DNA of 64,000 nucleotides, taken from the sequence record OQ363659.1; one strand, given 5' to 3'. This document shows positions 8,899-61,555 of the stretch, piece after piece. Each line of letters starts with the position of its first letter. Positions within the stretch are counted from its first letter, which is position 1. A model generated the notes under the pieces. That model was not told where the DNA came from and made no database searches. It saw nothing but the letters and a program-made list of their open reading frames with translations. The translations under genes were made by a program, and so were the position numbers.

Positions 8899-8907
8899 CT
8901 TTTTTCC

Positions 8908-9213: not shown

Positions 9214-9214
9214 G

Positions 9215-9901: not shown

Positions 9902-9973
9902 GGTCTTGCTCCTGAATAAACTTAAGGATAAGGATCTGCGGTTAATGTACGGGTATAGCACAACAACAAGGAT

Positions 9974-10072: not shown

Positions 10073-10075
10073 CTT

Positions 10076-10330: not shown

Positions 10331-10818
10331 GGAACCTCGTATGGGTTCTTACCTGTGCGGAGATACTCCAGGTGGCGATGAATCTCACGAATGAGATCCT
10401 TCGGGAATACCACCCGATAATGCCCGATACGTTTATGACCTTCAGTGGTCAGATTCGTGTAGTTGAACTGGATCGTGCCCAGCTTCTTTTCAACCGATCG
10501 GTGAACGCACTTCACTTCCAGGTTCCAATCTGTGTCGGTACCGAAAGTGTAGTTGTCTAGCAACAGCGATGTGAATGCTGACAACAACGAGTCGTCGGCA
10601 ATACGCTGAGGGAACCAAGCTTGCGGATCATTGTAGTTCCGCTGCCAGTTTTCCCAAGCATGACATTCACGGAGCTCACGCATGGTGCACGGCAGTGTGT
10701 GTTCTGCCAGCTCCATCATGCCACGCAAGATGTCCGTGTAGTTTTGTTTGCCTTCCGTGAATTCCCAGCAGCGGAAGAACATTTGTTCCAACGCAATACG
10801 CGAGATCTTCTCGTTCAT
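10321..10818 (-). CDS. hypothetical protein
   Basis: 165-aa ORF. Confidence 0.7.
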   Translation of the reverse strand: MNEKISRIALEQMFFRCWEFTEGKQNYTDILRGMMELAEHTLPCTMRELRECHAWENWQRNYNDPQAWFPQRIADDSLLSAFTSLLLDNYTFGTDTDWNLEVKCVHRSVEKKLGTIQFNYTNLTTEGHKRIGHYRVVFPKDLIREIHRHLEYLRTGKNPYEVPCE

Positions 10819-10819
10819 G

Positions 10820-11071
10820 TCAACTTTCCCCGTCTAAATCCACACGTTTTCCTTTTATGGTCCCACAACCCTTACAACGAAGGGTATACAGATGACCAAT
10901 CAAGGGGTGTCGTATATTACTGATTTCGGCAACCTTGATGGTTTCCCATTCATGAGAATGGGGCGCCGGAATGACTTGTACTTTACGCTCAGTGCGTGTT
11001 GCACAGAACAAAGCGACTACAGAAACTCCCAGTGCAACCAGGGAGATAAACAGAGCTGGTGTGAGTTCCAT
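10820..11071 (-). CDS. membrane-anchored Zn-ribbon-like protein
   Basis: Start MELTPA; N-terminal TM, HxHxW and LRCKGCG. Confidence 0.6.
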   Translation of the reverse strand: MELTPALFISLVALGVSVVALFCATRTERKVQVIPAPHSHEWETIKVAEISNIRHPLIGHLYTLRCKGCGTIKGKRVDLDGES

Positions 11072-11079
11072 GACAACCC

Positions 11080-11265
11080 TTAAAGGCAAGGAGCGGTGGT
11101 GGTATTGAGAGCGATTAGCAAGATCATAATGACCGGAGCCAACAGACCCATGATCCACCACAAACGTTTCTCACGTTGGGTAGCGTCACCAAATACTGCA
11201 AACACAGCGGCACCGAGCAATCCCATCATTGCTGCGATCATCCAACCTACTAATGCGGAAAGCAT
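11080..11265 (-). CDS. small two-TM membrane protein
   Basis: Start MLSALV at 11265 with an AAGGGGG RBS. Confidence 0.65.
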   Translation of the reverse strand: MLSALVGWMIAAMMGLLGAAVFAVFGDATQREKRLWWIMGLLAPVIMILLIALNTTTAPCL

Positions 11266-11266
11266 G

Positions 11267-11488
11267 TTACCCCCTTGAAACTCTACCACTTACTTGGTTC
11301 ACTTTCTGTGTACTGATCTTACCGCAACGCCCGCAACCCATGGTGTAAAGTTCATGGGTCACGTACTTGCCGTCATGATCAATCGAGATCATTGATCCAT
11401 CATAACGGCTACGGATTTCTTTGCAAGATAGCAGCTGATAGTTGTGCTGACAACCACCAACGAACAACCGCCAGAGTTCGTACAGCAT
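11267..11488 (-). CDS. small Zn-ribbon-like protein
   Basis: GCQHNY...GCGRCGKI. Confidence 0.6.
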   Translation of the reverse strand: MLYELWRLFVGGCQHNYQLLSCKEIRSRYDGSMISIDHDGKYVTHELYTMGCGRCGKISTQKVNQVSGRVSRG

Positions 11489-11784
11489 TACCCGATCTTC
11501 CCGTCGGTTACACGGTAAACCGAGTTACGGGTTTCGATCAACCCGTTCTCATGGTCGACGTTCTGCACCAGCGAGGTACGGATCGACCACCAATCGTCAT
11601 GAACGTAATGCTCACCGACAGCGACCTGAGCATCCTCAGGGATGTCCAGACGTTGTGGCCACAGGTCGCGCGCTTTGAGCAGCTTGGCACCACGGATTGC
11701 GTAAACCAGCTTACCGTTAGGCCCTTTAACAGGATCAAGATTTTCATCGAGTTCCACCACGCGAACATCTACACCCTTTTCCAT
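11488..11784 (-). CDS. hypothetical protein
   Basis: 98 aa; AAGGAG RBS. Confidence 0.7.
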   Translation of the reverse strand: MEKGVDVRVVELDENLDPVKGPNGKLVYAIRGAKLLKARDLWPQRLDIPEDAQVAVGEHYVHDDWWSIRTSLVQNVDHENGLIETRNSVYRVTDGKIG

Positions 11785-11793
11785 GATTGCTCC

Positions 11794-12291
11794 TTAAGCG
11801 TCTGCGTATTCGTGTTGGTCAGCGATAGCGGCTTCAACCGTGTTATCGCCTTGTGACAACCGGGTAGTCCAACCCAGTCGCTCGCGGATAACCAAAGCCA
11901 ACATGACTTTGCCTACCTGGCGAGGATCGAAGTATTCCGTTGCATGTCCAGTGAACGTATCACCGAACAGCGAGACGTAGCAGAATTCGGTGAGTTCACG
12001 AATACCGTGTTCACCACGATCTGCTTCTTGGGTGTGGATGAACCAGTACGACTTCGAGTTCTCGACCTGGAACTTCATCCCCACTTTGAACATCTGGATG
12101 CGGATGTAATACCACGCGGTGTCATCAGACACCAGTGCCGAGTCAGGAACCGCGAAACCTTCCTTCCATTCAGGATGGAACGCGTTCATGTAGTTCATGA
12201 ACGTTTCCAGCTTCAGCCGGTCCACATCCGATTTGATCCGGTTTGGTACTGCTACGAACAGTTTCAGTACCGAATGATCCAATACTAACAT
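11794..12291 (-). CDS. hypothetical protein
   Basis: 165 aa; AGGA RBS. Confidence 0.7.
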   Translation of the reverse strand: MLVLDHSVLKLFVAVPNRIKSDVDRLKLETFMNYMNAFHPEWKEGFAVPDSALVSDDTAWYYIRIQMFKVGMKFQVENSKSYWFIHTQEADRGEHGIRELTEFCYVSLFGDTFTGHATEYFDPRQVGKVMLALVIRERLGWTTRLSQGDNTVEAAIADQHEYADA

Positions 12292-12553
12292 CTTTCTTTC
12301 CTGTGTTGAACCATTCGCTAAGTACGATGGTTGTTCTAGTCTTATTGTTGACCGTCTTGTATTTCAGACGAATCACTTTCCAACCTGCCCGATGCAATGC
12401 AGTGAATACATCACGCAGATCTGATTCTTCGTAACGGCCTTCCAGTTTAACGTTGTAGCCTTGAGCGCCTTTCTCGACTAGTGGGTCATTCCCCATAGAG
12501 ACCCAATAGTTGTTCCCGTCAGGAAACAGAAGTTGCTGAGCGACTTGGTTCAT
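12170..12553 (-). CDS. hypothetical protein (3' end overlaps the next gene by 122 nt)
   Basis: Probable start MNQVAQ at 12553. Confidence 0.55.
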   Translation of the reverse strand: MNQVAQQLLFPDGNNYWVSMGNDPLVEKGAQGYNVKLEGRYEESDLRDVFTALHRAGWKVIRLKYKTVNNKTRTTIVLSEWFNTGKKDVSIGSFGTETVRSSTKPDQIGCGPAEAGNVHELHERVPS

Positions 12554-12697
12554 CAGTCGCTCATCACGCTTCCTTGCGCGACGAGAGAAGGTTATGCTAG
12601 GAGCGGGCAGCGAATGAAACAGGGGCATCCTTTACCTCGAACGAATAGGCCGAGCACGGCTTCTGAGGGTCCTTACAGAACTTCTCAGACACGTACC

Positions 12698-12784
12698 CTA
12701 CCGGTTGGTTACATCATAGAAAGCCTTCGCTACGCCCACGCTACAAGCGCAGACGAGCGAGAGGGCGAGTACTGCTTTACGCAT
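12698..12784 (-). CDS. 28-aa signal-peptide-like microprotein
   Basis: Hand-translated MRKAVLALSLVCACSVGVAKAFYDVTNR*; ATG adjacent to the upstream stop. Confidence 0.35.
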   Translation of the reverse strand: MRKAVLALSLVCACSVGVAKAFYDVTNR

Positions 12785-12785
12785 A

Positions 12786-13118
12786 TCAAATCCACCGTGT
12801 AGCGTGAGGGTATTCAGCACGAATACGTTTAGCGATGTAGCGATGATCTGGGAACGATGTAGACAAGTTCACCCACATGATGCGAGCTGGGCTATTGTGC
12901 ATCTGTTCCAACCACTGACTACGGTTTAGTTTGCCAGCTGCCAATCGATCATTGATTGACTGTCTAGCGGTTGACTTCATCCATTCATCCTTGAGACGGA
13001 CGATCTCTTTATCAATAGCGCGGTATGGCGCAGCTGCATGTGCCACAGCAACGAAGCCTGCTGCGATCACCACCTTCGTGGCAACGCGGCCAACGCAGTA
13101 GAGTGTGAAATTGTTCAT
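12786..13118 (-). CDS. hypothetical protein with N-terminal hydrophobic helix
   Basis: 110-aa ORF. Confidence 0.6.
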   Translation of the reverse strand: MNNFTLYCVGRVATKVVIAAGFVAVAHAAAPYRAIDKEIVRLKDEWMKSTARQSINDRLAAGKLNRSQWLEQMHNSPARIMWVNLSTSFPDHRYIAKRIRAEYPHATRWI

Positions 13119-13174
13119 GGTGTTGTCCCTAGCTTAAATAAAATTATTATCATGTAAAAAATAAAAAGGTGGAA

Positions 13175-13194
13175 GGGGAAGCTTTCGCCTCCCC
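13175..13194 (-). terminator. rho-independent terminator
   Basis: Minus-strand GGGGAGGC-GAAA-GCTTCCCC followed by a U-rich tract. Confidence 0.65.
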
Positions 13195-13203
13195 CGCCAG
13201 GCA

Positions 13204-13488
13204 TCAGTCAGGAATCGACTCGATGTAGATTTCGAAGTTCTTGCGCAGCTCGTCGAGCGAGTCCACGTAAGTAACCCGCTTCTCGAATTTGGCGAGAAGC
13301 TCACGCCCCTCGACTTTTACGTGTGCCTGGACAGTACCGACACGAGCTTTGTCTGCCCGGACACGATCCGTGATCGCATCCAGTTCCACGTACAGGTCTT
13401 CAACCTGATAGCGGTCCCACAGCCGTTGGCAAACAATGACACCACCGGCAACGATGCCGACTTTGAAAAGTGTTCCGAGCAGAGACAT
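13204..13488 (-). CDS. N-terminally anchored membrane microprotein
   Basis: LFKVGIVAGGVIV helix. Confidence 0.7.
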   Translation of the reverse strand: MSLLGTLFKVGIVAGGVIVCQRLWDRYQVEDLYVELDAITDRVRADKARVGTVQAHVKVEGRELLAKFEKRVTYVDSLDELRKNFEIYIESIPD

Positions 13489-13493
13489 ATCGG

Positions 13494-13679
13494 TTACTCC
13501 ATGACCGTTGGGTTTGGGCCATCAGTGGTTGGCGGGGTATCACCACCACCAGGGCCATTGACGACGTCGTCGGCGATTTCTGCGGCATCAGCAGAGATCT
13601 CGTCCCAGCTGCGACCGACTTGGAATGCTACGTAGCCCAGGGCAGCGATAGCGGTAATTTTCAGCATGGTCTTGAACAT
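13494..13679 (-). CDS. membrane microprotein with acidic/Pro-rich tail
   Basis: LKITAIAALGYVAF; AAGGA RBS. Confidence 0.7.
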   Translation of the reverse strand: MFKTMLKITAIAALGYVAFQVGRSWDEISADAAEIADDVVNGPGGGDTPPTTDGPNPTVME

Positions 13680-13732
13680 GGCTTGTTTCCTTCTATTGCT
13701 TCAGGGGTGACTCCCCGTAGGGAGCCGAGGGG

Positions 13733-13864
13733 TTACTTGGATTCTTTGCGCAGTTTCACAGTGGTGGCGATGTGAGAAGCGCAGGACTTGACAGTGGATG
13801 CAACCATCAGGCAGACAACGATCTTACCGAAAGGACCCATCTCTTTGAATGCTTGTGCGATCAT
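13733..13864 (-). CDS. 43-aa membrane microprotein (not in ORF track)
   Basis: Hand-translated MIAQAFKEMGPFGKIVVCLMVASTVKS...; GGAG RBS. Confidence 0.6.
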   Translation of the reverse strand: MIAQAFKEMGPFGKIVVCLMVASTVKSCASHIATTVKLRKESK

Positions 13865-13914
13865 GTTTGTTACTCCGTAAATTATGAATTAGGTTCTAGC
13901 GGGGAAGAAGCAGA

Positions 13915-14031
13915 TTACTTCTTCTCTTCCACTTTAGGATTTGGGCGAGCGGCTTCCGAGATCGATTTGACAACTTGCTCGATGCAGCCGAGAGCGATGG
14001 AAGCGAGGATGATTTTGCCGAAAGTATTCAT
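13915..14031 (-). CDS. 38-aa membrane microprotein (not in ORF track)
   Basis: Hand-translated MNTFGKIILASIALGCIEQVVKS...; AAGGA RBS; first gene after promoter P1. Confidence 0.65.
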   Translation of the reverse strand: MNTFGKIILASIALGCIEQVVKSISEAARPNPKVEEKK

Positions 14032-14055
14032 GACTAATTCCTTGTGATCAAGTGC

Positions 14056-14100
14056 GCTATATTCACGATTGTAATATAGCCTTTAAATGGTTTTAAATCA
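14056..14100 (-). promoter_or_regulatory. early (virion RNAP-type) promoter P1
   Basis: TGATT-N17-TATATTAC; TATATTAC is the known phiKZ early consensus; 8-bp inverted repeat around +1. Confidence 0.85.
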
Positions 14101-14298
14101 GGCTTCGTCGCGGACTGCTGCAACTACCGCAGTCAAACCAGCTGTTACGCAGACGATACCCGAGCCTAACAGGATGGTTACGTCACGGCGTTGGTGACGT
14201 TTACCGGCATTATCAACACCGGCCTTGAGCATGACACCTCCGAGACCGAGGGACACACCAGAGGCCATGCCTATTGCGATACGGTTCAGAAGTTTCAT
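14098..14298 (-). CDS. two-TM Gly-rich microprotein
   Basis: AIGMASGVSLGLGG and GSGIVCVTAGLTAVV. Confidence 0.7.
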   Translation of the reverse strand: MKLLNRIAIGMASGVSLGLGGVMLKAGVDNAGKRHQRRDVTILLGSGIVCVTAGLTAVVAAVRDEA

Positions 14299-14309
14299 AC
14301 AGCCTCCGG

Positions 14310-14513
14310 TTAGCCTTTGATGATTTCGACTACGTTCTTGACAGCAACAGCCGCACCGACTGCCGCAATGAACGAACCCACACCCATGTACAGGTGGCGT
14401 TCGGCATCAGACTTATCTTCTTTCATGTTAACAGCATGTTTGACGAAGTCCGAACCAACAGCGACGGTAGCACCAGCGCAGAGAGCAATACCAGCTTTGA
14501 AGAGAAGATTCAT
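14310..14513 (-). CDS. two-TM Gly/Ala-rich microprotein
   Basis: AGIALCAGATVAVG and GVGSFIAAVGAAVAV. Confidence 0.7.
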   Translation of the reverse strand: MNLLFKAGIALCAGATVAVGSDFVKHAVNMKEDKSDAERHLYMGVGSFIAAVGAAVAVKNVVEIIKG

Positions 14514-14543
14514 GATTATACCTACTTAATTTGGGGGAATGGA

Positions 14544-14864
14544 TTAACGAGTGGAAAGTATTTCTTGGGTGTTCGCTGACTGTTTCTTTTTAAACAGTCG
14601 CTTGTGCGCACGTATCGAATAGAACGTACCCATTGCACCACCTAAAGCAGATGGCACAAACACAACCCAGCCAGAGTGCAAGAACAACCCGAAGGTAGCG
14701 AAGATGGTTGTAGTTACCAGTACAGAAGTACCAGCCGCCACCCATTCACGACCTTGTGCAATATTGCGAGATTGGAAAGACTTAACAAATGCTTCAAAGA
14801 ACGTGACAACAAAAGCCAAGATGAATGGCGTAACGAGCACAACAATGTTGACAAACGAGCTCAT
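14544..14864 (-). CDS. multi-pass membrane protein
   Basis: Three to four hydrophobic segments, ending GGAMG...H-basic tail. Confidence 0.7.
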   Translation of the reverse strand: MSSFVNIVVLVTPFILAFVVTFFEAFVKSFQSRNIAQGREWVAAGTSVLVTTTIFATFGLFLHSGWVVFVPSALGGAMGTFYSIRAHKRLFKKKQSANTQEILSTR

Positions 14865-15046
14865 CGTACCACCAACATTTCTTGGCCATTAGGGCCGATG
14901 CGGTGACCGAGGATGGTTGGTTTCTTTTCAGCTTTGATTGCAGCGTATTCTTCATGATTGGTTTCGGCCATGGCAGTCAGATGCTGCATACCGAAAGAGC
15001 CTACAGCAACAGCAATCAGGAAGTAAACAGTCTGGAACTTGATCAT
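14861..15046 (-). CDS. membrane-anchored microprotein
   Basis: YFLIAVAVGSFGM; AAGGA RBS. Confidence 0.6.
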   Translation of the reverse strand: MIKFQTVYFLIAVAVGSFGMQHLTAMAETNHEEYAAIKAEKKPTILGHRIGPNGQEMLVVR

Positions 15047-15116
15047 GGTGAAATCCTTAACTTAATGTGATAGTGCTTTTGCAATATATCGATGCGGTAC
15101 ATTGCAGAAGAACTAT

Positions 15117-15134
15117 GGGGACCCGAAGGTCCCC
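15117..15134 (-). terminator. hairpin (terminator or processing site)
   Basis: GGGGACC-CGAA-GGTCCCC; weak U-tract. Confidence 0.6.
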
Positions 15135-15141
15135 TGTTCGA

Positions 15142-15390
15142 TTATTGCGGGTAGACTTTCAACTGGGCTTCGTTCAGTCGATTGACGAACATGTGACCCA
15201 GCGCTTCGCCGAGGGAATCGGCATGTTCCTGAGTAGCTTCCCCACGAGGACCGACATCATCGGTCTCGAATGGTTCACCACGCATGGCTGCTTCGTAGCG
15301 CTCGTTGTGCCTCAATACATCCAGACGCTTCTTGTTCTTTCTGGAGAGGAATGGATAACGACCGGTGAACGGAGTTTGGTCTTGGGACAT
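15142..15390 (-). CDS. hypothetical protein
   Basis: 82 aa, coupled. Confidence 0.65.
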   Translation of the reverse strand: MSQDQTPFTGRYPFLSRKNKKRLDVLRHNERYEAAMRGEPFETDDVGPRGEATQEHADSLGEALGHMFVNRLNEAQLKVYPQ

Positions 15391-15815
15391 CAGTTGATTG
15401 CCTTTTCAGTTGCCATGCGGACAACTTCCTCACGGAAGAAGTTGCGCTGTGCGTTGTTCTGGTGACAGTCGGAAACCTCACCGTCGACCATCAGTTCATC
15501 GACGTCGATACGCGCCACGTCGATTACGGTCTCACCGAAGATGGAGATGTTGAAGCGGTTGCAGATGTACTTCTGGACGGGATCATCCTTGAATGGAATG
15601 ACCACACGTGCGCTTTGTGACTTGTCCATGAAGACGTAGTTTACGTCGTAGATGGCTTCGTTTGCTTCCATGGTGCAAGTGATCTTGGAGATCTGGCGAC
15701 CATTAGCGATCCAGCTGCTCATTGGAGCTTTAGGACCGAAGGTGAATGCAGCGTGCATCACCTGGTGAGTCAGGTGGATGCGGAAGGAGTTCAGTTCAGC
15801 GTCGTTACGGTTCAT
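15390..15815 (-). CDS. hypothetical protein
   Basis: 141 aa; AAGGA RBS. Confidence 0.75.
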   Translation of the reverse strand: MNRNDAELNSFRIHLTHQVMHAAFTFGPKAPMSSWIANGRQISKITCTMEANEAIYDVNYVFMDKSQSARVVIPFKDDPVQKYICNRFNISIFGETVIDVARIDVDELMVDGEVSDCHQNNAQRNFFREEVVRMATEKAIN

Positions 15816-15847
15816 GCAGAAATTCCTTTTACTACTTAGATTGGGAT

Positions 15848-16024
15848 TTATTGTTTCGGGAGCAGCTTGGGTTGTGTCGGCTTAGTGGTAGCCGACACTT
15901 CCACGAGAGACTTCTGGCTCAGGCTATGCAGGTAGCCTTCCCGAACGCTGCGGTAAATTCTGTGGCCGATTACGCCAACGACGGCTACACCGGCTACAAT
16001 ACCGACAGTTTTCAGAGTGCTCAT
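15848..16024 (-). CDS. 58-aa membrane microprotein (not in ORF track)
   Basis: Hand-translated MSTLKTVGIVAGVAVVGVIGHRIYRS...; TAAGGA RBS. Confidence 0.65.
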   Translation of the reverse strand: MSTLKTVGIVAGVAVVGVIGHRIYRSVREGYLHSLSQKSLVEVSATTKPTQPKLLPKQ

Positions 16025-16034
16025 GTTCTTTTCC

Positions 16035-16316
16035 TTAGAGGCCGTTGGAGGCCATTTTGATTTGCTTGAGAAGTTCGCGGTGAAACTCTTCGCGATGGGA
16101 ATCGACGGTAATCGAAGTACCGGCGAAGAATGCCCAGCCAGCCAGATCTGCTTCCAGCTCGACAGCGGTTGGCGGGAACTCGAAGTGGGTCAGAGCAGTT
16201 TTGATCTGCCCTGGGATTTCACGCATCAGGTCATTACGACGCAGGCGGGATTCGTTCCAGAAGCAGGCGCCGCAAGCAGCGATAATGCCAACAGCACCGA
16301 GGATTACGTTACGCAT
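16035..16316 (-). CDS. N-terminally anchored membrane microprotein
   Basis: VILGAVGIIAACGAC; AAGGAG RBS; first gene after P2. Confidence 0.75.
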   Translation of the reverse strand: MRNVILGAVGIIAACGACFWNESRLRRNDLMREIPGQIKTALTHFEFPPTAVELEADLAGWAFFAGTSITVDSHREEFHRELLKQIKMASNGL

Positions 16317-16341
16317 GGTGGAACTCCTTAAAGTGGATTAA

Positions 16342-16380
16342 TTCACGATTGTAATATAGCGGTTTAAAAAGATGGAATCA
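16342..16380 (-). promoter_or_regulatory. early promoter P2
   Basis: TGATT-N17-TATATTAC-AATCGTGAAT. Confidence 0.85.
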
Positions 16381-16716
16381 ACCCAGGTCTACCAGGCGAT
16401 TGATATGTTGCTTGACTTGCTCGATCCCATGAGGTGGGAACGATGCACGGCTGATCTCACGACCATCTACCGAAGTCACTACCTGGAACCCTTGCAGGTC
16501 ACGGTAGAACACCTCGACGGTGTCTTCGTCTTTTCCGTACTCACCGACCATGTAGGCGGTACCGAGGATGTACGTGTAGCGGAAGTTGACGATCGTGCCT
16601 TCGTGCTGGGTGACGTAGAACACACGCTCGTCTTTCTTGTACTTGGTCGGGTCCCAGATGTGGGTGGGATTGGTGATGTAATCGATGAACAGATCGAGTT
16701 CGTTTTTGTTGGCCAT
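16378..16716 (-). CDS. hypothetical protein
   Basis: 112 aa; AAGGAG RBS. Confidence 0.75.
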   Translation of the reverse strand: MANKNELDLFIDYITNPTHIWDPTKYKKDERVFYVTQHEGTIVNFRYTYILGTAYMVGEYGKDEDTVEVFYRDLQGFQVVTSVDGREISRASFPPHGIEQVKQHINRLVDLG

Positions 16717-16748
16717 GCTTTACTCCTTAGGTTATCTTAATGTCACGG

Positions 16749-16780
16749 CATAAAGGCTTCCCTGCTGGGAAGCGCTTATG
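16749..16780. terminator. CATA/TATG-flanked hairpin
   Basis: GCTTCCC-TGCT-GGGAAGC flanked by CATA and TTATG. Confidence 0.6.
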
Positions 16781-16788
16781 GCGTATCA

Positions 16789-17316
16789 CTATTTGTTACT
16801 CAACCATGGCGGGTATACGACTACCATGGTGTTAGGAATCTTCTGTGAGGCTTCCTCGATCATCTCTGAGACGATATCGAAGTCTAACCCACCATTACCA
16901 CATCCAAGCGGTGGAACAATGATCTTCCAGGCTGGACTGATTTGGTCTTCTTCATTACCGATGTTATCTACGAGCCATTGTAAACCTTCGGCCACGTATT
17001 CATAGGTGGAAGGATTCTTCCAATTCTCCTTGGTCGGTAGCATCAGGTATCGCTTACCATCAGTACCTTCATAGAGCGCACAATGACCGATCGTAATCGA
17101 TTTCATTTTGCAGTCATGTTTGTATTTGAGGAATAGATCAGGATGACGCTCTGCGAATGCTTTAGCTACGCCAGCACCCATCACACCAATCGTGTTAACA
17201 GTTACGATGTAAAGATCTCCTGGTTCTCTGAAGATGTCTTTACCAATAATGAATTCAGCCATTGAACCGGCTCCCATGAAATTGTCTAATGGAGGGACCG
17301 ACATGATCCCTCTCAT
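16789..17316 (-). CDS. DarG/TARG1-type macrodomain (ADP-ribosyl hydrolase)
   Basis: VNTIGVMGAGVA, LPTK.NW and PPLGCGNGGL motifs; exact start uncertain. Confidence 0.85.
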   Translation of the reverse strand: MRGIMSVPPLDNFMGAGSMAEFIIGKDIFREPGDLYIVTVNTIGVMGAGVAKAFAERHPDLFLKYKHDCKMKSITIGHCALYEGTDGKRYLMLPTKENWKNPSTYEYVAEGLQWLVDNIGNEEDQISPAWKIIVPPLGCGNGGLDFDIVSEMIEEASQKIPNTMVVVYPPWLSNK

Positions 17317-17329
17317 TAGATTGAGTTGA

Positions 17330-17500
17330 TTATTTTTTCAACTCAGATTGCAATTTCAGGGAGGCGATTACCATGCCCAGAACTACGGTAACACAGCTAC
17401 CAGCGGCAGCCATATACTTCAACCGTGCCGTCTGACGATCGATGTCTTTGGTGGACATGGCGGTCTTTGGGTCGTCGGAGAAGATGCCTTTGAATTTCAT
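17330..17500 (-). CDS. 56-aa microprotein with C-terminal TM (not in ORF track)
   Basis: Hand-translated MKFKGIFSDDPK...AAAGSCVTVVLGMVIASL...; ATGA overlap with the upstream stop. Confidence 0.6.
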   Translation of the reverse strand: MKFKGIFSDDPKTAMSTKDIDRQTARLKYMAAAGSCVTVVLGMVIASLKLQSELKK

Positions 17501-17886
17501 GCGATTGCCTTATTCTTTTCACGGAGTTCATTGAGTTTTGCCATTGCCGGACCAGCACCGATTTGCTTGTCCATGCTCAGCGCACCAGTCATGCCTTTGA
17601 TGCGAAGGTTGTGCTGGCGGCACAGGTCCAGAACACTGCGTTGTTCTTTCCAGACCATGTCGCGTATTTGCTTATCGGTCATGTAGACCGAGATGAACAT
17701 CATGGAACACATGGCTTTGAAGCCAACGGCCTGGATGCCATCGATCCACTTTTTCGCTTTCTTACGAATGCGGTCATTCTTGGAGCTGGTTGCGATCTGC
17801 ACCAACTTCATGCCACGACGCTCGATGTAGACTTCCAGGTCTTTCTTGGTCTTTTCGATCAGTTGCTTGCGAGTTTGGAACTTCAT
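17497..17886 (-). CDS. basic hypothetical protein
   Basis: 129 aa. Confidence 0.7.
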   Translation of the reverse strand: MKFQTRKQLIEKTKKDLEVYIERRGMKLVQIATSSKNDRIRKKAKKWIDGIQAVGFKAMCSMMFISVYMTDKQIRDMVWKEQRSVLDLCRQHNLRIKGMTGALSMDKQIGAGPAMAKLNELREKNKAIA

Positions 17887-17965
17887 AGTTTTTTACCCCA
17901 AAAAGAAATCAGCTTTTGATTGAATGCCCAAGGGTCCACGATCAATCGATCATGAACCCCAGCGC

Positions 17966-18088
17966 TCAGCGGCGCTGTTTAGTTTTCTGCTCGTGAGCAA
18001 CGATGGCCTTAACGGCGTAGTGAGACGCTACGCCAATGGCAGTAGCGATGGCGATGCGTTTTGCTACGTCGATCAGATGACCTTTCAT
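17966..18088 (-). CDS. 40-aa microprotein, paralog family B
   Basis: Start MKGHLID with a GGAG RBS; IAIATAIGVASHYAVKA. Confidence 0.6.
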   Translation of the reverse strand: MKGHLIDVAKRIAIATAIGVASHYAVKAIVAHEQKTKQRR

Positions 18089-18110
18089 TTTAAGCTCCCG
18101 AGCAGATGGG

Positions 18111-18281
18111 TTAGTTGGACTTGGCCAGGACGGTGGCGACACCAGCGACGCACAGGGTGACGATTGCACCACTGACAGCGATCTGGGTCATGTCACGTTT
18201 TTCAGCTTTTGCTTCATCAACCAGAGCTTTAGCGTGTGCCAGGCCGAGGATACTGAGTGCAGCGAGTTTGATGATTGGCAT
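18111..18281 (-). CDS. 56-aa hydrophobic microprotein (not in ORF track)
   Basis: Hand-translated MPIIKLAALSILGLAHAK...IAVSGAIVTLCVAGVATVLAKSN*; GGAG RBS; first gene after P3. Confidence 0.65.
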   Translation of the reverse strand: MPIIKLAALSILGLAHAKALVDEAKAEKRDMTQIAVSGAIVTLCVAGVATVLAKSN

Positions 18282-18311
18282 GATTGAATCTCCGTAGCGT
18301 GGGGTGTGTTA

Positions 18312-18351
18312 TATCACGGTTGTAATATAGCGGTTAAATCGTTTTAAATCA
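18312..18351 (-). promoter_or_regulatory. early promoter P3
   Basis: TGATT-N17-TATATTAC. Confidence 0.85.
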
Positions 18352-18726
18352 AGCAGTACGTTCTACCACGCTGATGTTGGTGACATCAACGTAGTTGGAA
18401 ACTGGGATGGTGTTGCGGTAGAAGCGGAGTTGGTGACTGTATTCAGCGCGCTTGTCACGTGGAGCTTCTTCCAGCTTCACATCGCGACGAGCGAATGCTT
18501 TACGGTACAGCGGAATCAGACGGAACTCGAAGCTCAGCGAAACTTGTTCAACTTTGGTGATGCGATCTGGACGGAAGAACCCAGGCAGGTCCTGACCGAT
18601 GATGTCCAAGATATTATCGACCTCACGTTCAATGCGAGCCATTTCCATGCTGCGGGACTGCTGGACGTGTTTGCGGATGATCAGCAGTGCGACAACGATG
18701 AAGCCGATAACGAGAACAGTGTTCAT
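18349..18726 (-). CDS. N-terminally anchored membrane protein
   Basis: VLVIGFIVVALLII; AAGGA RBS. Confidence 0.75.
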   Translation of the reverse strand: MNTVLVIGFIVVALLIIRKHVQQSRSMEMARIEREVDNILDIIGQDLPGFFRPDRITKVEQVSLSFEFRLIPLYRKAFARRDVKLEEAPRDKRAEYSHQLRFYRNTIPVSNYVDVTNISVVERTA

Positions 18727-18775
18727 TTGATATCCTTAATTCAAATCTTAGATTGGGTGTAGCGAGAGTATAGCG

Positions 18776-18892
18776 TTACTTAGCTTTCTTTGCAACCTGA
18801 GCATCGATCACTTTGATCGCGGCTTTGGTGGTGTAGTGTGCCGTGACACCGATTACGATTGCTTTGGTCAGGGCGATGGCGAACTCTTTCAT
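18776..18892 (-). CDS. 38-aa microprotein, paralog family B (not in ORF track)
   Basis: Hand-translated MKEFAIALTKAIVIGVTAHYTTKAAIKV...; AAGGAG RBS. Confidence 0.65.
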   Translation of the reverse strand: MKEFAIALTKAIVIGVTAHYTTKAAIKVIDAQVAKKAK

Positions 18893-18902
18893 GTGGAACT
18901 CC

Positions 18903-19070
18903 TTACTTTAGGGATTGTTGACGAGCTTTGTCTTCTTTGGCACGCTGTTTGGCGTGACGTTTGGCAGCGTACTGTACGCAGAAGCAGCGCTTGCCGATTT
19001 CGTTCAGAGCCAGGAAACCCAGCCCCAGAACAGCGGCAGTCTTAGCTGCCCAAATCATTTCATCTTTCAT
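18903..19070 (-). CDS. membrane-anchored microprotein
   Basis: Start MKDEMIW overlapping the upstream TGA; AAVLGLGFLAL. Confidence 0.6.
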   Translation of the reverse strand: MKDEMIWAAKTAAVLGLGFLALNEIGKRCFCVQYAAKRHAKQRAKEDKARQQSLK

Positions 19071-19273
19071 TTCTGATTCAACCATGCTGTAGTGATGACG
19101 AAAGAACCGGCAGCCAGAACTACACCACCCAGGAGGTTCTTCTTGTGAGCCGACAGCTTGACGCCATCAACGCTTACTTCAGTCTTCGGATTCATGATCC
19201 GTGCAGCGGCACCGAGAGTAGCACCACCCAGAGTAGCACCACCCAGAGCCAGAGTAGCGATGTAATTCAGCAT
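19067..19273 (-). CDS. glycine-zipper two-TM microprotein
   Basis: LALGGATLGGATLGAA, containing a 15-nt tandem duplication; AAGGAG RBS; first gene after P4. Confidence 0.7.
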   Translation of the reverse strand: MLNYIATLALGGATLGGATLGAAARIMNPKTEVSVDGVKLSAHKKNLLGGVVLAAGSFVITTAWLNQK

Positions 19274-19301
19274 GAGAACACTCCTTAGCGTAGTTATTAC
19301 A

Positions 19302-19348
19302 GGGCCATATTCACGATTGTAATATAGCCCTATAAATGTTTTAAATCA
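19302..19348 (-). promoter_or_regulatory. early promoter P4
   Basis: TGATT-N17-TATATTAC; 10-bp inverted repeat with one mismatch. Confidence 0.85.
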
Positions 19349-19663
19349 TACTTCAGCGAGTATGATGAGATGGCGATTAACAGAATACATCTGTTGCAGC
19401 CACATCTGAGTGCGTTCTGCACTGAACGTGGCACGCATGTAACGGCGCTCAATTCGCTTGTGGAGGTTGTGGAGTTCATCCAGAGCTTCCATCCGTGTGA
19501 TCGTCTTTTTGTTCTGACGGTCTCGGATCTTCTCGAACTCGGTTGTGTATTCTTCCACACAACGGCAACACTCGGTAACACGCATACCAAGCTTTGCCAT
19601 GCCCCATACAAACACAGTGGTCAAACCAACGGTTGCAAGAACAGCACTATTGTCCGTACTCAT
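19346..19663 (-). CDS. N-terminally anchored helical protein, family C
   Basis: TM followed by ITRMEA motif; AAGGAG RBS. Confidence 0.7.
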   Translation of the reverse strand: MSTDNSAVLATVGLTTVFVWGMAKLGMRVTECCRCVEEYTTEFEKIRDRQNKKTITRMEALDELHNLHKRIERRYMRATFSAERTQMWLQQMYSVNRHLIILAEV

Positions 19664-19694
19664 GGTAGAACTCCTTCGCCTCTAGGCGAGTAGG

Positions 19695-19859
19695 TTAGAA
19701 ACCGTGGACCCAGACGGTCATAACCAGGAGCACTCCGAAGAGGGCTCCCAGTCGGCGAGGCGTGATCCACAACAGATCTTGTTGGACGGGCGGAGGCTCT
19801 TGGCCCTCTGCCATTTTGCGATAACGTTCGTTTACAGCATCGTCGATTTGGTGATTCAC
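19695..19859 (-). CDS. 54-aa microprotein with C-terminal TM (not in ORF track)
   Basis: GTG start overlapping the upstream TGA, GGAGG RBS; ...LGALFGVLLVMTVWVHGF*. Confidence 0.6.
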   Translation of the reverse strand: MNHQIDDAVNERYRKMAEGQEPPPVQQDLLWITPRRLGALFGVLLVMTVWVHGF

Positions 19860-20176
19860 TTTACATCCTCCAGCAATTTCTTACGACCTACTCGGCAACG
19901 CTCGAAGAACTCTTCAGCGTCTTTTCTTTCCTCCAGGGTTACGTGGAGGTAAGCGAGCTTGTAACGATCGATGATCAGATCGATCTTGGTTTCCGCTTCC
20001 GAGCGAGTCATATGACCGTGCTTGCAATTGAACTCATTTACATCCAGTTCAACTTCCATGTTCTTCAAGGCCAAGATAGCCTTGCTGGTGCGAATGCTGA
20101 TGCGGGCGACCGATGCTACACCAATAGCAGCAGCAACACCTACGATCGAGAGCAGAGCTTTAGAGCCGAAGTCCAT
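19856..20176 (-). CDS. N-terminally anchored helical protein, family C
   Basis: LLSIVGVAAAIGVASV followed by MTRSEA motif; first gene after P5. Confidence 0.75.
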   Translation of the reverse strand: MDFGSKALLSIVGVAAAIGVASVARISIRTSKAILALKNMEVELDVNEFNCKHGHMTRSEAETKIDLIIDRYKLAYLHVTLEERKDAEEFFERCRVGRKKLLEDVK

Positions 20177-20201
20177 AATTGTGTCCTTTTAATTGCGTAG
20201 A

Positions 20202-20240
20202 TTCACGTTCGTAATATAGGCCTTTAATCAGTTTAAATCA
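20202..20240 (-). promoter_or_regulatory. early promoter P5
   Basis: TGATT-N17-TATATTAC. Confidence 0.85.
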
Positions 20241-20621
20241 AGTGCCAAACACGAATCCTTCGATATCACCTGTATCCGTGGTGATCGTAGTAACGCTTTT
20301 AATAGGGGATTGGATCTGGGCTAGTGCCGGTGAGATGATACGGAACAGATTATCGAGGTAATAGAAGAAATGGTTAAACCCTGGGGTGTAGCACTCGAAG
20401 TGTTCACGTAAGCTGTTGATGAATGCATTGTATTGCAGATTGTCTTTGCTGATATAGAACTGGTGCCGTGCTAACAAGAAAGCAGCAGTCTTGGTATAAA
20501 CATCGTTAACCAACCGCATGTCAATATTCATGGATTCTTTTAGGCTACCGATGAGGTTATAAGACCATACTTGTTCTACACGGATGAAATGGTTGATGCC
20601 CTGCATGAGATTACCTGTCAT
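20238..20621 (-). CDS. hypothetical protein, last gene of the structural operon
   Basis: Start MTGNLM at 20621 with a GGAGGG RBS. Confidence 0.7.
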   Translation of the reverse strand: MTGNLMQGINHFIRVEQVWSYNLIGSLKESMNIDMRLVNDVYTKTAAFLLARHQFYISKDNLQYNAFINSLREHFECYTPGFNHFFYYLDNLFRIISPALAQIQSPIKSVTTITTDTGDIEGFVFGT

Positions 20622-20649
20622 AGTCCCTCCCGTTGGGGAGGGACGTATG

Positions 20650-22047
20650 TTAATTTGTACGAGGTGCATCTGGGTCTACAATGACCGGATCACCTTCTTT
20701 ACGGTTAATGAATACACCCAGTGTTACGATACCTACGTGTGAAGTGACTTCAACGTTGGAATCTCCTTGGGCTCTAGATTCGTCTACACCTAATAACACT
20801 CCGTTGTAAGTTTCTACCGAGTTGTCACTAGCGGTCATGAACTTAACGGGCATACCAGGGAACAACAGATCTGAATCCCCATGGAACCACTGAAGCTTTA
20901 AGAACATCCCACGTCGACGAGCCATCTCCGAGTAATGCTTGAATGGGTTAGAGGTAGCGCGATCGTAAGCCCACCGTACGTTGTTGAACCCAGACTCTAG
21001 CAAACCAGTAGACACTTCGAACAGGTTAGATGCCCGATCGATTAACGTCCGGTTATCCTTAGCCGTACCGAAGTCCCCTAGGAGCTTCGTAACGTCGCCA
21101 AAGCGTAAACCGTTACCCTGTTTAAGGTTATCGGCTAAACCGTTGTCTAGGGCGCTTGCATCGCCTGTAGCGAGCACTGTTACGTGCTGCTCATCCACTT
21201 TGTAAGTACGCTCTGCACCTTGGTACCGATCGTTAGGAACGTTGATCAGTTTTAGTACCTTCATGTTCTTCTTGTAACGAGTTGAGTCGTACAGTGGATA
21301 CACGTACCAATACTGATCTTGCAGATAACGTCCAAAGCCTGTAGGGTAAACCCCACCTTCCTCTTCGTGGATGTAATGGGGCACGTCTTTCAACATGATC
21401 CCATCAGGGAAATCCATAACCGTACGGATCTCAGTGTTGTAACCATCGAGGAAGTTGATACCTAAGACACGCTTAGCGTCTTGAGTACCTACGTCGCCCA
21501 TTGTGGAAGCCAGCACTTCTTGGATAGCCTGCATCGGTTGACACTGCCGTAGGGAATTACCATACGACATCATGTTAACCCGGAATGCTGCTTCATCGAT
21601 GAGCTGAACTGCAACCGAGATCATCCCGAGTTGGTTCAACGATTCACGTGAGCTCGTTTGAGAGTCTTTGTTCGTAACCGCATTGTTGAACTGAGTCATT
21701 AATACTGCACGATACCGTTTAACCTCAGACTTACGAGACGTATCCATTGCATTCGAGTTGTACTTGAGTGGAACGTACACGACTTCGCATTGGAGGTTAT
21801 CCCGATTGGGAACAACGTCGTATTGGAAATCGCCTTGGTTCATCAAGAACTGAATCATCCGTCTATCAGAGAACTGTTCCTTAGAGGCATAGTCTCGTGT
21901 GAGGGATTCGTACTCAACCTTGAAGGGTTTGATCCACATCGTTTCTTTTGCGATAAGCTGGCAGTCAATCCGCCAACCCGAGTTACCTTCGCCGTTGTCA
22001 CGGATGTCATCAACCTCTCGCATTAACAGCGTATTGTCAATGGCCAT
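20650..22047 (-). CDS. virion (probably tail/baseplate) protein, phiKZ gp101-like
   Basis: 465 aa; synteny with the phiKZ gp101-gp84 block. Confidence 0.65.
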   Translation of the reverse strand: MAIDNTLLMREVDDIRDNGEGNSGWRIDCQLIAKETMWIKPFKVEYESLTRDYASKEQFSDRRMIQFLMNQGDFQYDVVPNRDNLQCEVVYVPLKYNSNAMDTSRKSEVKRYRAVLMTQFNNAVTNKDSQTSSRESLNQLGMISVAVQLIDEAAFRVNMMSYGNSLRQCQPMQAIQEVLASTMGDVGTQDAKRVLGINFLDGYNTEIRTVMDFPDGIMLKDVPHYIHEEEGGVYPTGFGRYLQDQYWYVYPLYDSTRYKKNMKVLKLINVPNDRYQGAERTYKVDEQHVTVLATGDASALDNGLADNLKQGNGLRFGDVTKLLGDFGTAKDNRTLIDRASNLFEVSTGLLESGFNNVRWAYDRATSNPFKHYSEMARRRGMFLKLQWFHGDSDLLFPGMPVKFMTASDNSVETYNGVLLGVDESRAQGDSNVEVTSHVGIVTLGVFINRKEGDPVIVDPDAPRTN

Positions 22048-54337: not shown

Positions 54338-54357
54338 ATGGAGCCCGAAGGCTCCAT
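54338..54357 (-). terminator. rho-independent terminator
   Basis: ATGGAGCC-CGAA-GGCTCCAT with a long U-tract on the minus strand. Confidence 0.8.
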
Positions 54358-55124
54358 TAATAATAACTCGTAGTCTCTGGCTTGGTGTAATACACCCGCT
54401 CTGGATCTTTTTTGAGTCGCTTGTTTATCAGCTGGAATGGCATCCGTGTAACATCCACTGCTACTCGGAATGAAGGATAAGTAATCCCATCGATAAAGAT
54501 AGGTCGAGCAAACTTATTCCTTTCCGGCAGAGCAGCTAACAACGCTTCTACAGTCTTTGGATCAGAATGTCTTTCCCACAATAGGTTCAACATCTTAGGA
54601 GATTGCTCGAAGCGTTTGATCGCATCGGCATAAGACTCCTTCATTATCTTCACCACGTACTCACCGTGGTTGTATTCGAAGATCTGTTGCATGTAGATGT
54701 TGGGGTGTCTACCTATAGCCAGTTTCCATTCCATGTTCTGGATGGAACGATGAATATTCCGAGACTCCCCAATCCAAACGAATCCATTCGGGAAAGCGAC
54801 TTTGTACACCCCTTTGTTTTTCGTCAAAGGGGATTTCGTTTCATTGAGTGTCAGTTTCTTAGTACGGGCTTCACGGAGTCGTATCAACAACACTCGTTCA
54901 GCTTGTTCTAAGTTCTGACAGACTTCAATCTCGAAAGCAAAGTCTTTATGGTTACCCGACTTGTTAAACAGTTCTTGGCACTTACGGGACTTGTGCAAAC
55001 CATCACACAGCAACCCATGATGCCAGTCTTGTTGTTTAGCAAAGTTGTTGGTCATCCCTGAAAAAACTTGCTCCGTTAGAATGTGGCGTAAGTGATACAC
55101 GCCATTAACTGAGTCAAAGAACAT
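54357..55124 (-). CDS. free-standing tandem GIY-YIG endonuclease-like protein with C-terminal DNA-binding module
   Basis: GVY..FSG and GVY..WIG motifs; C-terminal PIFIDGITYPS..A (NUMOD-like); start 55124 with AGGAGG. Confidence 0.65.
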   Translation of the reverse strand: MFFDSVNGVYHLRHILTEQVFSGMTNNFAKQQDWHHGLLCDGLHKSRKCQELFNKSGNHKDFAFEIEVCQNLEQAERVLLIRLREARTKKLTLNETKSPLTKNKGVYKVAFPNGFVWIGESRNIHRSIQNMEWKLAIGRHPNIYMQQIFEYNHGEYVVKIMKESYADAIKRFEQSPKMLNLLWERHSDPKTVEALLAALPERNKFARPIFIDGITYPSFRVAVDVTRMPFQLINKRLKKDPERVYYTKPETTSYY

Positions 55125-55145
55125 AGGACCTCCTGACGGCATAAT

Positions 55146-55195
55146 ACAGGGACTGTTACATCCCTGTAATATAGTTCTGACTTTCTATCGAATCA
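55146..55195 (-). promoter_or_regulatory. early-type promoter P7 with hairpin
   Basis: TGATT-N17-TATATTAC; ACAGGGA/TCCCTGT inverted repeat. Confidence 0.7.
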
Positions 55196-61490: not shown

Positions 61491-61508
61491 GATCGTATCC
61501 TTAAATGA

Positions 61509-61555
61509 GGGCTATATTCACAACTGTAATATAGCCCCCAAGAAAGTTTAAATCA
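61509..61555 (-). promoter_or_regulatory. early promoter P6
   Basis: TGATT-N17-TATATTAC; perfect 10-bp inverted repeat GGGCTATATT/AATATAGCCC. Confidence 0.85.

Follow-up and report, generated by a model that had tools for sequence, protein, structure and literature searches.

The 64,000-nt stretch of DNA analyzed here (the window) carries seven copies of a rigidly spaced module that is interpreted, with a probability of roughly 70 %, as the early promoter type of phages phiKZ and 201phi2-1 in a phiKZ-like, nucleus-forming jumbo phage, the abutting genes sharing stop codon bases with it. The window is 100 % identical to Pseudomonas phage D6 and represents bases 186001-250000 of OQ363659.1. D6 is a phiKZ-like jumbo phage of Pseudomonas syringae with a genome of 307 kb and a G+C content of 49 %, and its record annotates several split RNA polymerase (RNAP) beta/beta' genes and a PhuZ tubulin; the match to the PHROG RNA polymerase beta family had an E value of 7e-143.

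The sequence GTAATATA is found on the plus strand at positions 14071, 16351, 18322, 19319, 20211, 55166 and 61526, each representing a minus-strand copy of the core TATATTAC, and in all seven AATCA follows exactly 17 nt beyond it (0 expected, 100 shuffles). Both the positions and the fixed spacing of the seven minus-strand TGATT-N17-TATATTAC copies reported in the initial annotation were thus reproduced. In total the window contains 8 core matches on both strands, compared with 0.75 expected; the eighth, at 10913 on the opposite strand, is unrelated to the module. An unbiased repeat search of the window returned as its top family the same five copies at 14071 to 20211, with a length of 51 nt, and the module measures 37-51 bases depending on the extent taken. 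These five copies, designated P5 to P1, lie within a 6.2 kb island of small hypothetical genes whose content varies among relatives, and divide it into promoter-to-promoter units of 3 open reading frames (ORFs) and of 4, 6 and 8 genes, in agreement with the 3-8 genes originally proposed. The 3-ORF unit includes one unannotated but conserved ORF.

Promoter anatomy and the expected polymerase

All seven promoters of the window are on the minus strand. P5 (14064..14100) comprises TGATT (14096-14100), an A/T-rich 17-nt spacer, the core TATATTAC (14071-14078) and a conserved TG (14064-14065), and the others occupy 16344..16380 (P4), 18315..18351 (P3), 19312..19348 (P2), 20204..20240 (P1), 55159..55195 and 61519..61555. 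Across the 307 kb genome D6 has 25 exact cores, 23 of them on the coding strand and followed after roughly 22-45 nt by a Shine-Dalgarno sequence and start codon; this orientation and distance fit promoters upstream of gene runs, for which an early role is predicted. A weight matrix applied to the whole genome identified 9 further one-mismatch or degenerate sites, and none in a shuffled genome. The conserved D6 positions in the matrix, numbered from the core start, are G-21, A-20, T-18, A-15, T-9, A-5, C-1 and T+13/G+14, the conserved upstream element being GAyT at -21 to -18. The promoter consists, in this order, of GAyT, an A/T-rich stretch in which A-15 and A-5 are invariant, C-1, the core TATATTAC and, five bases beyond the core and near the probable start site, TG, with no length variation between the fixed parts. 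Each promoter would drive a run of small early accessory genes. Cores are not always intact in relatives, those of the P4 orthologs being degenerate (TATATAAC, TATATCAC).

The D6 core does not differ from that of the phiKZ early promoters, BLAST of the 51-nt module gave matches in the phiKZ, PhiPA3-group, RVTF4 and Psa21 genomes, and the module fits the published early promoter consensus of 201phi2-1 (PMC7058600). In published work the early motif precedes early start sites by about 10 bp, is ascribed to the virion RNAP, and is accompanied by conservation at -10, -20 and -30 (PMC7598289; PMC8244752; PMC11512511). Shared between D6 and the phiKZ/201phi2-1 early promoters are the core TATATTAC, a downstream G or TG, an upstream A/T-rich TTTAAA-like stretch, the conservation at about -10, -20 and -30, and the dispersal of copies ahead of runs of small hypothetical early genes; the copy number is also similar (roughly 23-32 in D6, 28-32 in phiKZ). 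The start site, timing and polymerase of the D6 promoters are those that its relatives would predict, the polymerase presumably being the multisubunit virion RNAP. The lineages differ at -21, where G is preferred in D6 and Psa21 (GATT) and T in phiKZ and 201phi2-1 (TAWT/TATT), and it is this G that makes a TGA possible at D6/Psa21 promoters. The motif stands out in D6 because of the 49 % G+C genome. A further difference from phiKZ and 201phi2-1 is the presence in D6 of two promoter subclasses, gene-abutting and terminator-preceded. The module is an unremarkable variant of a familiar promoter type for which the -20/-30 conservation is already published, and the current understanding of the family is unchanged by these findings. 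They provide a usable early promoter map for D6 and Psa21-type relatives (23 exact and 9 degenerate D6 sites in two subclasses), and the fixed positions (GAyT, A-15, A-5, C-1, core and TG) constitute a template for mutational study of promoter finding by the virion polymerase that nucleus-forming phages carry, an enzyme still poorly understood.

Folding of 53 promoters gave core-overlapping stem-loops with z<-2 in 17, the strong and conserved examples being those of the P2 and P5 orthologs and of the copies at 55166 and 61526, and no stem-loop was found at P1, P3 or P4. The stem-loop over the P2 core (19297..19335, minus strand; -20.2 kcal/mol, z=-7) is retained, with G.T wobbles, in the P2 orthologs of those relatives that were tested. 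On the same strand, one covers the core of the 61526 copy (61506..61540; -20.0 kcal/mol, z=-6.2), one begins within the core of the 55166 copy (55140..55173; -16.0 kcal/mol, z=-5.1) and is conserved in L139, L141 and L144/145, and a weaker one covers the P5 core (14056..14080; -8.5 kcal/mol, z=-2.1). A virion-carried polymerase and early promoters able to form a hairpin recall phage N4, but the N4 virion RNAP is a single-subunit, T7-like enzyme that requires each of its promoters to have a short hairpin, whereas the D6 enzyme is multisubunit and most of its promoters are hairpin-free.

Gene turnover at the promoters and the PeSL comparison

Comparison with relatives identifies the island, which includes a DarG-like macrodomain, as a site where early accessory genes turn over. 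The PeSL cassettes of T4-type phages are credited to Arbiol et al. 2010 and Comeau et al. 2014. Their published anatomy consists of an upstream stop codon in an A/T-rich stretch, -35 and -10 boxes, a stem-loop that often covers the -10, a Shine-Dalgarno sequence and ATG, in a plastic region containing ORFans (PMC2839356). The initial annotation was reminded of these cassettes, and as regards anatomy the resemblance stood, the D6 modules having a stop codon, an A/T-rich stretch, -35/-10-like boxes separated by 17 nt, in about a third of copies a stem-loop able to overlap the -10, a Shine-Dalgarno sequence and start codon, and a location in a plastic ORFan region with some indel edges exactly at the motif. 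The strongest alternative, which is nevertheless considered unlikely, is that the modules, of about 50 nt, are PeSL-like mobile regulatory cassettes acting as recombination points through which gene units would be inserted, deleted and shuffled, with the stop codon edge as the edge of the homology block. Several rearrangements suit it: in L128 a 278-nt insert with a 97-aa gene separates the stop of the 125-aa gene from the GATT of P3, L133 inserts end at -25 and -27, several gene swaps begin at +31 to +64, P4 follows the 112-aa gene in D6 and precedes its ortholog in Psa21, and a gene of the D6 P4-P5 unit is found just upstream of P3 in L128. For shuffling at the modules the outcome was mixed, since beside these exact edge breakpoints the mapping of indel breakpoints in relatives placed 7 of 17 at modules, compared with about 27 % expected for random gene junctions, an enrichment that is not significant (p=0.15), and conserved modules make alignments end at their edges trivially. 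The order P1-P5 is stable in four phages. Module identity is 0.75 by orthologous position and 0.57 within a genome, the second value being equal to the background (0.56). Gene conversion and hybrid modules are thus not indicated, and this comparison of identity by position and by genome found no concerted evolution of the copies. The hairpin is absent in about two-thirds of copies, the polymerase is the host sigma70 enzyme for PeSLs but is expected to be that of the phage in D6, and D6, as a phiKZ-like jumbo phage of an unrelated family and not a T4-like myovirus, could possess at most a PeSL analogue and not a member of the group.

For one clear cassette a homing endonuclease is the better explanation. 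Behind the 55166 promoter lies a 255-aa gene (54357..55124, minus strand) whose N-terminus resembles the GIY-YIG domain of I-TevI, and promoter and gene are jointly present or jointly absent among relatives. This cassette is a putative GIY-YIG homing-endonuclease insertion. It is closed by a terminator (54340..54355, minus strand) with a GC stem, TTCG loop and T-run, and the unit of promoter, GIY-YIG-like gene and terminator, situated between two conserved genes in some relatives and absent in others, resembles free-standing homing endonuclease genes or 'morons' with their own promoter, of which the T4 seg/mob genes are examples. The likeness is limited to one of the seven copies, and the endonuclease role is a prediction from sequence.

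A broader suggestion, doubtful at present, is that the early promoters of phiKZ-like phages are a convergent counterpart of PeSLs, with sigma-like two-part recognition by the virion polymerase, and serve as preferred joints for the gain, loss and movement of accessory genes. If true, stop codon, -35-like and -10-like boxes and hairpin would form composite units with sigma70-like 17-nt geometry, and the joints would concern early accessory genes such as anti-defence genes and homing endonucleases.

The stop codon at the promoter edge

Annotated coding sequences (CDSs) and a separate ORF analysis bore out that in six of the seven copies the TGA is the stop of the upstream gene: 14098-14100 for CDS 14098-14298 (P5), 16378-16380 for CDS 16378-16716 (P4), 18349-18351 for CDS 18349-18726 (P3), 19346-19348 for CDS 19346-19663 (P2), 20238-20240 for CDS 20238-20621 (P1) and 55193-55195, the native stop of an RNA polymerase beta-like subunit gene (55193-56539), all on the minus strand. 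At the 61526 copy the TGA is out of frame with the upstream CDS 61548-61751, which stops at the TAA at 61548-61550 inside TGATTTAAA.

Genome-wide, the 23 D6 promoters divide into 11 that abut a gene and 12 that lie behind a terminator without overlap, and with these 12 copies the stop overlap does not hold generally; copies lacking it had been named in the initial annotation as counting against its reading. TGATT is present in only 8 of the 23, and it also occurs without a stop role, at position 43867 of the D6 record and in a Psa21 copy behind a terminator. Thus the rigidly spaced promoter module claimed initially was supported, but the TGA as a fixed part of it was not, position -22 being variable (T, C, A or G at the orthologous promoters of relatives). 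A stop begins at -22 in 8 of the 23 promoters (6 TGA, 2 TAA), and T occupies -22 in 10 of 11 gene-abutting compared with 3 of 12 terminator-preceded promoters (Fisher p=0.003); where -22 is not used as a stop in D6 and relatives, T is found in about 7 of 28 promoters, which is about background. The 127-aa gene that precedes P1 stops at a TGA at -22 in both D6 and Psa21, and its orthologs stop at -23 (TAG; L130/L134/L135) or at -30 (TAA; L128/L132/L133). Despite the sliding stops the residues of the C-terminus are identical or nearly so; the module therefore does not truncate genes. The last codon of the RNAP subunit gene is unchanged in all relatives, and its stop is TGA in the five with the promoter and TAA in the three in which a terminator takes the promoter's place. 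A few genes extend deeper and stop within the promoter, at -17, -12 and -8, and -22 is therefore not a hard limit.

The enrichment of T at -22, the sliding stops and the TGA/TAA switch of the RNAP subunit gene suggest that the gene contributes the T and the promoter the GA. Where no terminator intervenes, the preceding gene would be packed against the promoter as closely as possible, its stop codon formed by T plus GA (T plus AA in two copies), the last two bases of which would be the first two of GAyT. This state would be reached repeatedly through small indels and substitutions and not by a stop delivered with a mobile module, and compaction is inferred as the selective reason.

The alternative that the module carries TGA, and TAA five bases later, as a selected back-stop for any upstream gene, so that cassettes fit any context, is improbable. 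It would account for the built-in stops of TGATTTAAA in two of three frames, for the use of -22 in 8 of the 11 abutting promoters and of -17 in one, and for TGA being 6 of the 8 stops at -22 compared with 35 % of stops in long D6 ORFs. It is opposed by the variability of -22 at orthologous promoters, by orthologous C-termini that stay the same with stops at -22, -23 and -30 and also where there is no promoter, and by the relatives compared, among which no gene was found extended or truncated to reach the module stop. The built-in TAA at -17 is also used far less than an unbiased back-stop predicts, with a single stop there and 8 at -22 (p about 0.02). This frame bias exceeds the prediction of simple capture of built-in stops, and because of it there is still room for selection for this exact junction or for co-inheritance of stop and promoter. 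The shared codon illustrates the extent of gene packing in these phage genomes, and annotators should be aware that the TGA belongs partly to the gene and partly to the promoter.

Sigma70 likeness and other readings

The geometry of the layout mirrors the sigma70 -35/-10 arrangement, as was initially noted, and at the level of sequence this is correct: TTGATT-17-TATATT scores 9/12 in three of the five island copies, at the optimal spacing of 17 nt. That these are host sigma70 or dual-use promoters read by the Pseudomonas housekeeping holoenzyme is nonetheless very unlikely. Such scores make a fair sigma70 promoter, and the PeSLs of T4-type phages are true sigma70 promoters (PMC2839356), but sigma70-like sites are not commoner in the region than in shuffles (16 and 12.7, sd 4.0), and a -35 hexamer match of at least 4/6 at -23 to -18 occurs in only 9 of the 23 D6 promoters. 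The positions that are invariant outside the sigma70 hexamers (C-1, A-5, A-15, the AC of the core and TG at +13/+14) favour reading by a phage polymerase, as in phiKZ, whose early promoter with the same core is rifampicin-independent (PMC4666361; PMC7598289; PMC8244752).

The strong hairpins possible at some copies could also suggest a repeated terminator, RNA-processing site or nuclease target between genes in place of a promoter, but this is extremely improbable given the orientation, the start codon distance, the identical core and extended similarity to the mapped phiKZ and 201phi2-1 early promoters, the lack of any match in an Rfam search with the module, and the separate and distinct terminator type of D6. 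A terminator-like stem-loop of this type, with a 7-bp GC stem and TTCG loop, lies inside the P4-P5 unit (15117..15134, minus strand), and the same type precedes the 12 other D6 early promoters.

Phage D6 and the repeat

The sequence at window 13000-21000 is a 100% match to Pseudomonas phage D6 (OQ363659.1), a phage of P. syringae pv. tomato DC3000 with a genome of 307,402 bp, in which base 1 of the window corresponds to record base 186001. D6 is a phiKZ-like jumbo phage whose record annotation includes several split RNA polymerase beta/beta' genes, a PhuZ tubulin and many virion proteins. One of its polymerase genes matched the PHROG RNA polymerase beta family (E=7e-143), and the nearest relatives by DNA are Psa21 (genus Tepukevirus) and RVTF4.

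The initial annotation described a minus-strand module, TGATT followed after 17 nt by a fixed core, which supplies the stop codon of the gene upstream, and this observation on the repeat, its spacing and the gene ends was confirmed in full. The core, GTAATATA, occurs eight times in the window versus 0.75 expected, and GTAATATA-N17-AATCA gave seven matches, at 14071, 16351, 18322, 19319, 20211, 55166 and 61526, versus none in 100 shuffles. The eighth GTAATATA (window 10913-10920, plus strand) was rejected as a chance match, being inside a coding region on the opposite strand with no flanking promoter positions. The top-ranking family in an unbiased repeat search, with a length of 51 nt, consisted of the five copies of the island, designated here P1 (20211), P2 (19319), P3 (18322), P4 (16351) and P5 (14071). 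The TGA of TGATT is the annotated end of a minus-strand gene at 14098, 16378, 18349, 19346, 20238 and 55193, and at the seventh copy the deposited annotation places the gene end at 61548, a TAA within TGATTTAAA; stop-to-stop ORF analysis concurred with the annotated ends at all seven copies. Between successive promoters of the island lie units of 3, 4, 6 and 8 genes, within the range of 3-8 claimed, one of these genes being an unannotated 54-aa ORF (window 19695-19859, minus strand) which, with 62% identity to the annotated Psa21 protein PSA21_115, is probably a real gene overlooked in the D6 record.

Probable early promoters

The modules are best explained as early promoters of a phiKZ-like phage, packed so closely that preceding genes end within the upstream promoter element. 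Alignment of the seven copies showed conservation extending far past two boxes, with A/T-rich TTTAAAA..ATTTAA and a C preceding the core on the upstream side, and AATCGTG followed by a Shine-Dalgarno sequence and an ATG about 30-40 nt past the core on the downstream side. The core is identical to that of phiKZ early promoters, the extended sequence agrees with the 201phi2-1 consensus listed in PMC7058600, and BLAST with the 51-nt module gave matches in phiKZ (one of them upstream of PHIKZ041.3), the PhiPA3 group, RVTF4 and Psa21. In published work the motif is positioned about 10 bp before early start sites and ascribed to the virion RNA polymerase (PMC7598289); it has been described as an extended -10 with a T-rich part upstream of -19 and 5'UTRs of 31-40 nt (PMC8244752), and as conserved at -10, -20 and -30 in the early promoters of phiKZ and 201phi2-1 (PMC11512511). 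The core, the extended match and these descriptions together identify the multi-part module as a known kind of promoter. By homology, we infer the polymerase that reads the D6 modules and the start site in D6, the position of the start relative to the core being taken from the text of those papers. An IMG/VR scan with TGATT-N17-TATATTAC-N4-TG (15 specified bases) returned at least 117 single scattered matches, which is the chance level, and an Rfam scan of the window returned no match.

The entire D6 record was retrieved piecewise for a genome-wide promoter survey, which yielded 25 exact cores, 23 of them on the coding strand before genes. A weight matrix built from these 23 promoters found nine more copies with one core mismatch, none of which falls within the window, and none in a shuffled genome. 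Counted from the core start, the fixed positions are G-21 (18/23), A-20 (20/23), T-18 (22/23), A-15 (23/23), A-5 (22/23), C-1 (23/23), the core itself and T+13/G+14 (22/23); T at -22 is present in just 13 of the 23. The rigidity attributed to the module holds throughout, and is a property of the promoter, since none of the 23 shows a length change between fixed positions.

Two subclasses were distinguished. Eleven of the 23 promoters abut or nearly abut upstream sequence, the preceding gene ending no more than 25 nt from the core start in ten, while at the eleventh (record 43867), which has TGATT, no gene is annotated upstream on the same strand; most of the eleven carry TTTAAA-like spacers and AATCGTGAAT downstream. 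The remaining 12 lie behind a terminator with a GC stem, a TTCG loop and a yTTTATG tail, have AAAATCTCAGATC ahead of the core, and read CGTTT, CGACT, GGACT and the like at -22 to -18; they include those at record 51615, 88409, 104307, 129463, 183169, 258639, 287485, 290131 and 293054, all outside the window. Terminators of the GC-stem/TTCG type within the window are located at 15117-15134 and 54340-54355.

The similarity to sigma70 -35/-10 spacing pointed out in the initial annotation is present in three of the five island copies, which read TTGATT-17-TATATT (9/12), but the region as a whole is not enriched in such sites relative to shuffles (16 versus 12.7, sd 4.0), and a match of at least 4/6 to the -35 hexamer was counted by hand in just 9 of the 23 D6 promoters. 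Recognition of the D6 modules by the host polymerase appears unlikely, since the invariant promoter positions fall outside the sigma70 hexamers and transcription of phiKZ is described as rifampicin-independent in passages of PMC4666361, PMC7598289 and PMC8244752.

Origin of the stop-codon overlap

At the abutting promoters the upstream stop is at -22 in eight cases (six TGA, and two TAA in TAATT) and occurs once each at -17 and -25. T occupies -22 in 10/11 abutting versus 3/12 terminator-preceded promoters (Fisher p=0.003), and where -22 is not part of a stop, T has about its background frequency (D6 and relatives, counted by hand), on which ground the proposal that T-22 is a promoter base, with TTGATT as a -35 box, was rejected. 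Island loci of relatives were drawn from IMG/VR by searching with the adjacent virion protein, and orthologous promoters read TGATT, CGATT, AGATT, GGATT, TAATT or GAATT at -22 to -18. For the 127-aa gene upstream of P1, the stop is TGA at -22 in D6 and Psa21, TAG at -23 in three relatives, in which one added base preserves both the stop and GATT, and TAA at -30 in a further three; despite this sliding stop, the C-terminal residues of the protein are identical or nearly so in all. In RVTF4 the stops are at -27, -24, -22 and -17. The clearest example is provided by the RNA polymerase subunit gene that precedes the copy at 55166. Its final codons are the same in 8/8 sequences, and it ends in TGA (TGATT/TGATC) where the promoter follows (D6, and four distinct relatives represented by five loci, two of them nearly identical) and in TAA in the three relatives with a terminator in the promoter's place. 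The sliding stops, the distribution of T and the polymerase gene together indicate that the promoter supplies GA (or AA) and the gene supplies T. The overlap is then the tightest possible packing of a gene against the promoter, arrived at many times.

The excess of TGA at -22 (6/8 stops, versus 35% of stops in long D6 ORFs) fits a T from the gene joined to GA from the promoter. This reading cannot fully explain the preference for -22 over -17, where the built-in TAA is used once versus eight times at -22 (p about 0.02). For the wider family, the account of gene-abutting early promoters is based on the island loci of relatives and one phiKZ promoter site, at which the upstream stop is at -28. 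The stop-codon overlap is a modest detail, of which no description in phiKZ-like phages was found in the literature searched; the term 'stop codon' is absent from PMC11512511.

Gene content and hairpins around the promoters

The initial annotation likened the module to the promoter/stem-loop cassettes (PeSLs) that shuffle genes in T4-type phages. In PeSLs the upstream gene's stop lies in an A/T-rich stretch and is followed by -35/-10 boxes, a Shine-Dalgarno sequence and a start codon, the stem-loop is mostly between -35 and -10 or over -10, and the cassettes are found upstream of ORFans in plastic regions (PMC2839356). The D6 modules resemble this anatomy, a stem-loop over the core being predicted in about a third of promoters. 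Gene content between the promoters varies among relatives, and some edges are exact: in one relative (L128) an inserted 97-aa gene, related to a D6 gene of the P4-P5 unit, separates the stop of the 125-aa gene from the GATT of P3, another (L133) has inserts that end at -25 and -27 as well as a small gene inserted at +43, and P4 follows the 112-aa gene in D6 and precedes its ortholog in Psa21. Against shuffling, 7/17 gaps touch a module versus about 27% expected at random gene junctions (three disjoint pairs, p=0.15), and the modules resemble their positional orthologs (identity 0.75) rather than one another within the genome (0.57; background 0.56), an identity matrix on which gene conversion among modules was also rejected. 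The order of P1 to P5 and their individual signatures are constant in four phages, and conservation of the modules is in itself a trivial reason for alignments to end at module edges. The PeSL analogy is good in form and, as a mechanism, unproven.

Among 53 promoters from D6 and relatives, 17 were predicted to have a stem-loop over the core (z<-2). Those in the window, all on the minus strand, are at P2 (window 19326, within 19297-19335; -20 kcal/mol), the 61526 copy (window 61533, within 61506-61540; -20 kcal/mol), the 55166 copy (55140-55173; -16 kcal/mol) and P5 (14056-14080), and those of P2 and P5 are retained at orthologs with G.T wobbles. Because the 5' hairpin arm precedes the probable start, these structures could arise only in read-through RNA or in single-stranded DNA. 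A role as phage terminators was rejected, since the promoter hairpins lack the yTTTATG tail that, with a GC stem and a TTCG loop, characterises the distinct D6 terminators. A single apparent compensatory pair, GAC...GTC in place of GGC...GCC, was seen at D6 record 128753.

D6 and four distinct relatives carry the promoter at 55166 together with the 255-aa gene it precedes; Psa21 and two others have neither. The break in homology falls exactly on the polymerase gene's stop codon, and similarity returns within the next gene; phages without the cassette have a terminator directly after that stop, and in D6 a terminator is located 3' of the 255-aa gene (promoter 55159-55195, gene 54357-55124, terminator 54340-54355, minus strand). 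The N-terminus of the protein resembles the GIY-YIG domain of I-TevI (PDB 1mk0, E=9e-5; an endonuclease PHROG, E=3e-7), so that the cassette probably represents a free-standing homing endonuclease equipped with an early promoter of its own.

Several other genes were recorded. A macro-domain protein (window 16789-17262, minus strand; 85% identity in Psa21) matches the DarG antitoxin over its macrodomain half (NCBIfam NF048014, E=1.6e-40, under the full-length cut-off) and, lying in the early-gene island, is a candidate for counter-defence against DarT-type DNA ADP-ribosylation. The small gene at 19067-19273 (minus strand), missing from Psa21, contains internal 15-nt direct repeats (GTAGCACCACCCAGA-like, plus strand) implying a short repeated glycine-rich peptide in the predicted product. 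Downstream of P5, about 35 small minus-strand genes (window 2322-14031) are without the early-promoter core, exact or degenerate, and are driven either by one very long early unit or by unrecognised middle promoters. Neighbouring tiny genes of 43 and 38 aa (window 13733-13864 and 13915-14031, minus strand) are mutual paralogs, and the pair is conserved in Psa21.
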